A DNA stretch of 64,000 bases, from the NCBI GenBank assembly GCA_002104945.1, contig MCFH01000047.1:186001-250000 (forward strand), read 5' to 3'. A model generated the notes under the pieces. The model searched no databases. It saw nothing but the letters and a program-made list of their open reading frames with translations, and was not told the DNA's origin. This document shows positions 53,589-58,153 of the stretch, piece by piece (the stretch's first letter is position 1; each line of letters starts with the position of its first letter). Made by a program: the position numbers and the translations under genes. The DNA comes from Piromyces finnis finn (Eukaryota; Fungi; Neocallimastigomycota).

Positions 53589-54651
53589 TTAAAGTATAAT
53601 TTTTATGTGTTGTAAATCGATGGAAGAATCAGTAGGAGAAGGATTCTTGGTCATTCTTTTATGAAATAATTGATACAAGGCATCTTGATTTTCTTTTCGT
53701 AAAAGATGGACTTTTTTTTCAAGTTTTTTCAAGGTTTGTTGATCTTCTTCAATACCTTGAGTGATATGATAAAGATAAAGATTATCATCATCATCTTCTT
53801 CTTTTTCTTCTTCTTCTTCATTTTCTTCCCTTTTTTCTTTTTCCTTTTCCTTTTCTATGAAAAGATATTTTTTTTCATTAGTTTTTAAGGATGCTTTTTG
53901 TGGAGGTGTTTTTTCTGTTGTTAAAGTTAATATGGAAGAAGAAGAGGAAGAAGTATTTAAATTTGGTAGGGAAATTTTTTTCTTTATTGAGGAAGGATCA
54001 TTGGTAGTAGAAGAGGATTCATAAAGGGAAGATAGGGGGTAAGTTTCATTTAAAGAAGAAGAAGAAATGGTATTTAATTTTTGATTAGGTTTTATTTTTA
54101 ATTTTGATTTTAATTGAGATGAATTTTCAAAATTTGAAAAAGAAGATACGGAAGAAGATGATGTTGAAGAGGATGATAATGACGTGGATGAAGGAAGATA
54201 TTGATAATAAATGGTGGGATGAAGGATGACGGATTTCACCTTGGTAGAATCATTAAAAATAGGATGAGTGAAATTAATTTTTAGAGTTGAAGTCGATAGA
54301 GTATGATTTTTTTCCTTTTGGTTATCCTCCACCACCACCTCCTCCTTTATTGAATTTTTTGGGGATAGGAAGGAGGAGGATAAAGAATTTTGAAGAGTAT
54401 TTTCAAAGGTTGAATAGTTTAAAAAGGAAGGATAAAATGCAATAGTTTGAGGGTCCGATGACTGACAAGATAAATATTGATATTGAAATTGTGGGGAAAA
54501 TGGTTTAATTTTTTGTGAAGCTGGTATTTTTGATTCCTTTTTAAAAGTAATAAGAATATTTTCTTTGAAAAAGGATTTAAATTGTTGAACCTGATCTAAT
54601 AAATTCATTAAAATTTTTTTCTTGTTTTGTATTTGATAATTATTTCTTCTA

Positions 54652-54682
<31 letters not shown>

Positions 54683-56959
54683 ATATAATTTGATATGATA
54701 ATAAATAAATGAATAGAAAAATAGATAATTAGAAAAATAGGATAAATAAAAATATAATAATAATAGTTTGAATATTTTCCATTTTTTTTTTTTTTTCAGA
54801 GTTTGATTATAAACATTTGGTATTTTGAGGTGATTAATAAATGAATTAAAAAAAAAATAATATGAATTAAAAACAATATTAGAAAATAAATAGAGGTGTA
54901 CCTAAGATGATGATGATGTTGATGATAATGATTTCTTTGTTCCTTTTTATATTCATTAAATACACTAGACTTTTATAATTTAAATTTAAAATAAATAAAT
55001 AAAAAATAAAATATTAAATATTTATTAGAGTCTTTTTTATTAAAAAATATATATATATATTTCAATAAATTCAAAATAGCTATTTATTTTTATATATATG
55101 ATGTATATAACAATAATAATAATGTTATATTTATTTACCATCCATTTCCAAAGATAATATTCTTTAGTATATTGTATGACAAGTTGATCAAATTGTTCTA
55201 TATCTTGTTGAAGATGGAACAATGTTTCTTCTTTTAACCCTTCCTCTTTTTCATATAAAAAACTATTCATACTATGAATAGTGATTTTTCTGGAATGAGA
55301 AGCTGATTCGGTGGAAAGACCATTAGAAATTAATAATTCTTTAAGAAAAGGATGAATATTTGATGTTGATGATGATGTCGACACCGACGATCTATTCTTT
55401 ATCTTTTTTTTAATAAAATATTGATAGTAAGATACGGAAGGAAGGGGAAAAGAAGATGATGATGACGTCAATGATCCATTAGAATCCAATTGTTGTTTTT
55501 GAAATTGATATAAAATTTTACAACGAGTTTGTTGTAACGTATATATTGATCGAAGTTGATATTTTATTTGTTGATTTAAATATTGAATAGAATAAAATTT
55601 ATCTTTTAACTTTTTTTAGTCGTTTTTTTTTTAATAAAGATAATAAAAAGTTTTAAAAAAAATGAATTGGTGATAATAATATTAAATAATAATGATAATT
55701 AATATTAATAATAATGAAAATAATATAATAATAACCATTATATAATAATATTAAATAATAATAATAATAAGGAAATATAAAATTACATTTGAAGTATTTT
55801 CTTTTAAAGGATACAGAGGGTCAGTTAATGTAGTTGAATAATAATTCATAGAGGTATCCTGAGTAAAAATATGTTGTGCTATGGTTTGAGGAGGGAAACG
55901 ATTCAAAATAAATGTAGAAGGATATGTTGTGGAAGAAGAAGATGTTGATGATGACGTTATTCTTTGATTTATATTCGATTTTTGTTGTTTTTCCTGTTTT
56001 TTCTGTTCTCCTTGACCTTCTTGTTGTTGTTGTTGTTCTTTTTCTTTTTTTTCGTTTTTTTTAGATTTAATCTCCGTCACTTTTGAAAATACATTTAAAA
56101 AAGAAAGTGACCAAGCAATAATAAGTAATAATTCTCTGAAGGAAAATAAGAAATTTAATAAATTAATATATATTGTATTAGTAATAGAATAGAATAGGTT
56201 TTGAATACCCTTTATAATATCTACAACATAGTTATAGATTAAAAATATATATATATAAATAGTCTATAGAGATAGATAAAATTAATCTACCTTGATGTAT
56301 ATTCCTCATAACTTTTAGAGTAAAAACAAAGTAATGGAAAGGAAAATTTCTTTAATAGGGTAGAAAGAACTAAATTTTTTAATGAATCTTTTGTTTCTTT
56401 TCTACCTAAAATAAAAAATATATAAAAATTTATTAATTTTTAATTTAATAATAATTATTAGGAATAGAGATAATAATGATATTACTATTGCTATTACTAA
56501 TTCTAATGAAATAATGACGTTTAACTAGTATATAAGAATTAAATATATTCTTTTTTTTTTTTCTTCTTCTTACCATTAATTTCTAAAACTTCTTTTAAAA
56601 TAAATTTTTCATATAATTTTTCAATAATTATATATAATGATTCTTTCTATTTTGACAAATTTTTAATTAATTGAGGGATGGATAGATAGGTTTAGAATAG
56701 ATTTTAATATAGATTTAAAGAAAAAGAAAATAATGAAATAATGAAATAATGAAAAATGAATATAGTTAATATATTTTATAGGAAAAAAATTTTTTTTTAA
56801 AAAAAAATAAAGGTAGAAATTTACCACAGAATTATCATTGAATTTACTTTTTCTTATCACCTCTGCTTTCACCCTCACATGTAAATAAGAATAAATAGTA
56901 TCTACAAAATATGTTAAAAACAATTTTGTATTGATTGTTCCTTCTTTATTTTTATTCAT
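53589..56959 (-). CDS. TEDC1: Tubulin epsilon and delta complex protein 1 (TEDC1/C14orf80)-like protein, 756 aa, 7 exons
   Basis: Exons 56959-56825, 56646-56574, 56405-56291, 56135-55787, 55609-55139, 54969-54902 and 54648-53589 sum to 2271 nt in frame. Ordered blocks EVIRKSKFN, SRELLLIIAWSL, IQYLNQQIKYQLRSI..LQQTRCKIL and YYLWKWMSSV match human TEDC1 blocks as I recall them (EIFRRAKFD, SRELLLALSWLL, VQWLMGKLRFRWRQL..QQEQCALL, FWRWMDTV). Needs an HMM check. Confidence 0.7.
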
Positions 56960-57766: not shown

Positions 57767-58153
57767 ATGTCAACATTTTCAAAAAGTGATTTTATCTATA
57801 CTTCTTGTTATTGTGAAGAAAATGTATATAAACTTTGTGAAACCTTACATGAAAAATTTTCCATTCCTTTATCAAAAATATATGCTATCTTTATATCTAA
57901 TGAAGATAAACAAGTAATTATTATTCAAAAGATATTAATAATTATCTATTTTTTTTTTTAAAAAAAAAGTGTTATTCTTCTTCAACTTTTAAAAAGAGTA
58001 ATAATAATAATAACTCTAAAATAATAAATTAGGTTTTATTTTGGAAGCAGAAAAACCAAGTAGATCATTTTTATCCAGTTGTTTGGGTACCTTTTGTTTT
58101 TTTCTATATCATTTAATTTATTTCAATGTCAAAATTTAAATTTTAATTTTTTA

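Follow-up and report, generated by a model that had tools for sequence, protein, structure and literature searches.

The window analysed here is a 64,000-nucleotide stretch of the genome of the gut fungus Piromyces finnis (contig C175:186001-250000; the genome searched comprised 56.46 Mb in 232 contigs). Its minus strand carries a gene of seven exons that extends, from start to stop codon, over positions 53589-56959. Splicing in silico yielded one continuous frame with a CDS of 2271 nt, corresponding to 756 aa; all six introns have GT-AG borders and measure 155-253 nt. The spliced translation is identical, residue for residue, to the database protein ORX44180.1 (UniProt A0A1Y1V0Y3; denoted P0002), which is listed as "hypothetical protein BCR36DRAFT_415212" of Piromyces finnis. 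The gene model was public beforehand, without a functional name. This identity confirms the assembly proposed in the first-pass annotation, in which three open-frame fragments and four small exons were joined into a 756-aa frame; the three long minus-strand open frames within 53589-56959 measure 339, 149 and 109 aa. The gene region is very AT-rich, with a GC content of 0.10-0.31.

Exon 1 (56825-56959, minus strand, as are all features below; aa 1-45) ends at a donor after the residues NDNSV, which is kept in the orthologous metagenome contig L001 described below. An alternative donor, GTGAGG at 56878, was ruled out, as the exon in L001 continues to 56825. Exon 2 (56574-56646) encodes aa 46-69 plus one base and was placed by the minus-strand reading, by identity to P0002 and by L001. 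Identity to P0002 also fixes exon 3 (56291-56405, aa 70-107), in which the Pfam scan places the beginning of a match to TEDC1 (tubulin epsilon and delta complex protein 1), and, together with the orthologue alignment, exon 4 (55787-56135, aa 108-224), which comprises a conserved RELLLI..W block followed by a first low-complexity insertion. Exon 5 (55139-55609, aa 225-381), delineated by Pfam, HMMER and alignment, contains two conserved TEDC1 blocks flanking a second, Ser-rich insertion, and its end is formed by an invariant YTKEYYLWKWM motif. Exon 6 (54902-54969, aa 382-403), placed by P0002 identity, L001 and a further contig, L024, encodes an SSVFNEYKKEQ block and a His run. The open frame of exon 7 (53589-54648, aa 404-756 plus stop), backed by P0002 identity and alignment, corresponds to a lineage-conserved C-terminal extension.

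A word search with exon 5 retrieved a 169-aa open frame, denoted P0001, on metagenome contigs, the longest of which is L001 (4747 bp). The seven exons, their phases and the GT-AG sites in L001 are all as in the window gene, and the contig encodes an intact protein of 662 aa with ∼60% amino-acid identity to the window protein. Synteny is preserved as well: in the window and in L001 alike, a gene for an N-terminal glutamine amidase lies divergently upstream. The dN/dS ratio between the window gene and L001 (Nei-Gojobori) is 0.24 overall; by segment, it reaches 0.57 in insertion 1 and ranges from 0.10 to 0.31 everywhere else, with values of 0.10-0.24 in the TEDC1 blocks indicating purifying selection. 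Nucleotide identity of introns versus exons, considered as another measure of constraint, proved uninformative at such AT content. The 2183-bp contig L024, from another relative, holds an uninterrupted orthologous ORF of 688 aa (P0007), whose alignment is colinear with the window model across all six junction positions. As an intron-free copy of a gene whose six introns are kept in two genomes, L024 would most simply represent a spliced transcript. Full-length orthologues are known from several gut fungi, and the gene is single-copy, with the 437-aa orthologue P0004 matching no other locus in the P. finnis genome.

Collectively, these data show that the window gene is a real, conserved and selectively constrained seven-exon gene. 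The very AT-rich, low-complexity sequence might suggest instead that the gene is mis-predicted or decaying and that the public model stitches together unrelated open frames; in view of the shared exons, phases and splice sites, the intact frame and the dN/dS of 0.24 in L001, the colinearity of the uninterrupted L024 frame over every junction, and the full-length proteins of several other gut fungi, we regard this as extremely improbable.

The Pfam TEDC1 domain (PF14970) spans residues ∼95-385 of the protein and is broken by two low-complexity insertions. The protein begins with a conserved helical N-terminal part (aa 1-126), which is 66% identical to L001. Insertion 1 (55787-56080; aa 127-224, 98 aa) lies inside the domain, is rich in Gln, Thr, Ser and Lys, and is only 37% identical to L001, at the elevated dN/dS given above. 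It is followed by a conserved Gln-rich helix (aa 225-266) that matches the middle of the PF14970 profile. Insertion 2 (55277-55483; aa 267-335, 69 aa), defined by alignment and composition, consists of 30% Ser and includes a short conserved YYQ.FIKKK island. The most conserved block of the protein, aa 336-403, contains the invariant YTKEYYLWKWM; on the basis of Pfam and alignment, aa 338-381 within it (55139-55270) are equivalent to the region that matches PF14970 positions ∼129-168 in the orthologues P0003, P0004 and P0005. Judged from these divergent sequences, the TEDC1 blocks that appear indispensable are RELLLI..W, the QQIKYQ.RSI..QQ.RCK helix and YTKEYYLWKWM.

Beyond the Pfam domain, the protein continues with an extension of ∼350 residues (aa 404-756), in which several blocks are conserved across gut fungi. 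Structure prediction and alignment delineate a long C-terminal helix at aa 658-738 (53646-53888) with the conserved core DQQTLKKL.KKV..LRKENQD. The segment is predicted to form a single long helix, with pLDDT values >90 at residues ∼694-734; it is amphipathic, shows a/d heptad periodicity through about five repeats and has a conserved C-terminus ending in IKII. AlphaFold2 modelling of aa 1-420 from six sequences returned an all-helical model with a mean pLDDT of 41, a value too low for fold comparison. The anatomy proposed in the first-pass annotation thus held in each of its parts: ordered conserved blocks are present and are separated in the orthologue alignment by variable low-complexity stretches, the Gln/Thr/Ser-rich and Ser-rich insertions do interrupt the TEDC1 domain, and the proposed C-terminal coiled coil corresponds to the predicted helix with its five or so heptad repeats.

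The PF14970 profile comprises 169 positions and has a curated Pfam cut-off of 27.4 bits. It is the top Pfam family for P0002, with 23.3 bits (E 8.9e-5) over profile positions 12-107, ∼4 bits under the cut-off; the match covers aa 101-264 (55490-56313), with introns 3 and 4 inside its span. The part comprising aa 225-420 alone scored 20.9 bits, in two stretches. When the exons were scanned one by one, exon 5 gave the sole TEDC1 match, a weak one (E 0.035, profile 74-109), the short exons being too small to pass the HMMER filters. The orthologues fit the profile better. PF14970 ranks first for the partial protein P0003 of Piromyces sp. E2 (25.2 bits, profile 69-164), for P0004 (38.2 bits, E 2.2e-9, profile 5-168 of 169) and for P0007 (34.4 bits, E 3.4e-8), the latter two lying above the cut-off; the Neocallimastix protein P0005 matches positions 129-168. 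Along the profile, these matches follow one another in the order in which the blocks occur in the orthologue alignment. Competing Pfam families reached no E-value better than 0.03 for P0002 or the orthologues, and for P0007 TEDC1 was the only Pfam match up to E = 10. In precomputed database annotation, P0004 and P0007 are both tagged PF14970. An ESM Atlas feature search with P0004 also returned TEDC1 for the top 11 clusters (score 0.93, 211 of 256 features in common); because the recognition value was low (1884), we count this result as weak support.

Direct searches remained within the gut fungi. An exon-5 HMMER profile run against 1.84 billion proteins found six proteins, P0002 among them, and all the named ones are from anaerobic gut fungi. 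Word searches, which had exon 5 or the orthologue alignment as query, likewise reached gut-fungal proteins only and no chytrid, animal or ciliate TEDC1, which agrees with the earlier expectation that the gene would be hidden from simple BLAST. Exon 5 matched nothing in a PDB sequence search, and no TEDC1 chain appeared in the PDB searches. A six-frame search of the P. finnis genome with PF14970 gave no match even at the TEDC1 locus, the method being insensitive to split, divergent genes.

The profile matches support, at family level, the assignment of the orthologous group to the TEDC1 family, with the window protein as a member that on its own scores 4 bits under the cut-off. The TEDC1 likeness claimed in the first-pass annotation is thereby upheld, both by the top Pfam match of the window protein and of its orthologues and by the two orthologues that pass the threshold over nearly the whole profile; the window protein by itself stays below the cut-off (23.3 versus 27.4 bits). 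P. finnis TEDC1 is a fast-evolving member of its family.

In animals, TEDC1, TEDC2, TUBD1 and TUBE1 assemble stoichiometrically into a complex that is required for triplet microtubules and stable centrioles (PMC11896610; 10.1101/156059), and zoosporic fungi retain centrioles together with the zeta/epsilon/delta tubulin module (PMC12659703). When the P. finnis genome was searched in six frames with the tubulin domain, about nine tubulin loci emerged. One of them, L008, is gamma-tubulin, matching gamma chains only (119 bits). A multi-exon tubulin, L007 on contig C165, showed the same distance to PDB beta chains as to PDB gamma chains; one of its exons is 46-85% identical to 27 fragments, among which the only names given are "tubulin epsilon" (56% identity). 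An ESM Atlas search with an epsilon-tubulin exon returned generic tubulin fragments only, which carry no subclass information. On these similarities, L007 is an epsilon-tubulin gene, and this subunit is present in the P. finnis genome. A 2014 survey gives epsilon-tubulin as absent from Neocallimastigomycota (PMC4202323).

Two further divergent tubulins have no good match to alpha, beta or gamma chains. The first, L012/L015 on contig C156, is a tubulin by Pfam (38.3 bits) and matched gamma and beta chains weakly (33 bits); the second is L013. No delta- or epsilon-tubulin chains were among the PDB search matches. By elimination, and from the N-terminus of human TUBD1, L012 is a candidate delta-tubulin. 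Findeisen (2014) reported delta-tubulin to be missing from Chytridiomycota and Blastocladiomycota and counted one fungal delta sequence (PMC4202323), which in our reading implies delta-tubulin in the gut-fungal clade. For the remaining subunit, a six-frame genome search was carried out with PF15764 (DUF4693). We take this profile to represent the TEDC2 family; it gave no match, and the same method also missed TEDC1 at its own locus. Of the partners expected if this fungus keeps the TED complex, as the first-pass annotation had proposed, the genome search delivered an epsilon-tubulin (L007), a candidate delta-tubulin (L012) and, by a procedure of low sensitivity, no TEDC2.

Two other readings of the TEDC1 likeness have to be weighed. 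The protein could be a lineage-specific, helical, low-complexity protein of gut fungi, in which Lys/Gln/Leu-rich helices match TEDC1 by chance or composition. Such a reading would fit the sub-threshold Pfam score of the window protein, the confinement of the exon-5 profile to gut fungi among 1.84 billion proteins, the low ESM Atlas recognition value and the absence of fold-level confirmation at a pLDDT of 41 for aa 1-420. However, four orthologues each have TEDC1 as their best family independently, their matches are colinear and tile all 169 profile positions, and two of them exceed the curated cut-off. Moreover, composition-driven matches normally bring coiled-coil or other families with them, and no such family competes here; the matching tubulins are also present in the genome. 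We therefore consider a chance resemblance unlikely.

Alternatively, the gene may be a true TEDC1 descendant that acts without delta/epsilon-tubulin or TEDC2 in a changed role; its product might, for instance, serve microtubules in general or the flagellar root, and the new function would then reside in the C-terminal extension. About half of the protein (aa 404-756) does lie beyond the Pfam domain and yet has blocks conserved among gut fungi, TEDC2 was not found in the six-frame PF15764 search, and the N-terminal cluster of the augmin subunit HAUS6 emerged as a distant ESM Atlas lead (0.77). The force of the last two points is limited, as a method that missed TEDC1 itself is insensitive to TEDC2 and the HAUS6 score lies under the lead threshold of the ESM Atlas tool. 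In addition, purifying selection acts on the TEDC1 blocks (dN/dS 0.10-0.24), and the genome has kept epsilon-tubulin and further divergent tubulins. A change of role of this kind thus appears to carry little probability. We conclude, with good though not complete confidence, that the window gene is the single-copy TEDC1 gene of Piromyces finnis.

Comparison with animal TEDC1 (human C14orf80, mouse Ted1) reveals similarities and differences. The Pfam TEDC1 domain is common to both and is present end to end in the fungal orthologues; both proteins are all-helical with a C-terminal helix after the domain, the fungal side being a prediction at a pLDDT of 41 for aa 1-420; and in both cases the host organism has centrioles and epsilon-tubulin. 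Animal TEDC1 proteins are roughly 400-450 aa long. In contrast, the fungal protein has 756 aa, its domain is split by insertions of 98 and 69 aa, and the domain is followed by a 350-aa extension with conserved blocks of its own. The two sequences have diverged beyond the reach of BLAST or phmmer. At the level of the complex, the animal system differs in that TEDC2 was not detected in P. finnis by the insensitive search. The Ted1 proteins of the ciliates Paramecium and Tetrahymena offer a parallel, as they too are non-animal relatives of TEDC1 that were found only by iterative profile search; ciliates, however, are placed in another supergroup, and the study concerned gives no member from fungi (10.1101/156059). 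The N-terminal domain of HAUS6 (PF14661) resembles the fungal protein in having a helical N-terminal domain followed by a coiled coil and in belonging to a microtubule-associated heterodimer. With an ESM Atlas score of 0.77, below the lead threshold, and no Pfam match, we claim no kinship.

In the AlphaFold-Multimer model of the animal complex, helices of TEDC1 and TEDC2 pair and face TUBD1 (PMC11896610). By analogy with the animal proteins (Breslow et al., Pudlowski et al.), helices of P. finnis TEDC1 would mediate pairing with a TEDC2-like protein, and the pair would dock onto a delta/epsilon-tubulin dimer at the end formed by delta-tubulin. Zoospore formation would be the stage at which the resulting complex is used, and its task there may be to construct the basal-body triplet microtubules or to keep them stable. 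The most likely role of the protein, on this analogy, would be to serve basal-body assembly at zoosporogenesis as a helical adaptor bound to the delta/epsilon-tubulin dimer. A variant of this scheme, which we regard as rather improbable, is that gut fungi, like ciliates, have TEDC1 without any TEDC2. The C-terminal extension with its long helix would then replace TEDC2, either by forming a homodimer or by binding a lineage-specific partner, and such an arrangement could possibly represent an ancestral, simpler cap for the delta/epsilon-tubulin dimer.

Of the proteins on which centriole triplet microtubules depend, TEDC1 and TEDC2 rank with the most poorly understood, and their rapid divergence has left their occurrence beyond animals sparsely charted. 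Breslow et al. traced Ted1 homologues out to ciliates, always alongside delta and epsilon tubulins and rapidly diverging, without mention of fungi (10.1101/156059), and a 2025 survey of chytrid centrioles does not mention TEDC proteins (PMC12659703). In the literature searched, TEDC1 did not occur together with chytrid or zoospore terms, and no description of a TEDC1 from fungi came up. Knowledge of how the TED complex works is unchanged by P. finnis TEDC1; its identification is that of a component which zoospore basal bodies would be expected to have and which had so far gone unlabelled. It corrects a "hypothetical protein" annotation, and with a fungal TEDC1 one more entry is filled in the table that sets the presence or absence of the TED proteins against that of delta, epsilon and zeta tubulins. 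With zoosporic fungi on the way to becoming tractable models for centrioles, the gene is a testable candidate in these organisms.

Upstream of the TEDC1-like gene, the window carries an NTAQ1-type N-terminal glutamine amidase gene on the plus strand, whose first exon lies at 57767-57916 (PF09764, 50.6 bits) and which continues onward from there. The two genes are transcribed divergently and are separated by an intergenic gap of ∼800 bp. The amidase neighbour is also retained, in the same orientation, at the metagenome loci L001 and L002.

The 437-aa orthologue P0004 ends early, and its tail is non-conserved. At L025:1347-1610, an antisense open reading frame overlaps the 3' end of P0004; the L025 contig may represent a chimeric or an intron-retaining transcript. 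On the L001 metagenome contig, the stop codon of the orthologous gene is closely followed by a homopolymer of over 100 T (L001:4150-4270), which has no counterpart in the window.

Several tubulin loci were identified in the Piromyces finnis assembly (G000). A beta-tubulin-like N-terminus that runs on into an open frame of 1930 aa (L009-L011, G000:C167:440363-444343) corresponds to the long-tailed beta-tubulin mentioned in a 2014 tubulin survey (PMC4202323). A very divergent tubulin (L013, G000:C156:1506788-1510099) yielded no PDB match at an E value of 1e-6. A second contig carries an apparently identical stretch (L016, G000:C147:5368-8472), which gave the same 28.4-bit match and has the same open frames on its flanks; either the sequence is duplicated in the genome or the assembly is redundant here.

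The same survey listed Neocallimastigomycota as being without epsilon-tubulin. Because a multi-exon epsilon-tubulin gene is present in Piromyces finnis (L007, G000:C165:430548-433823, minus strand), this entry looks outdated.
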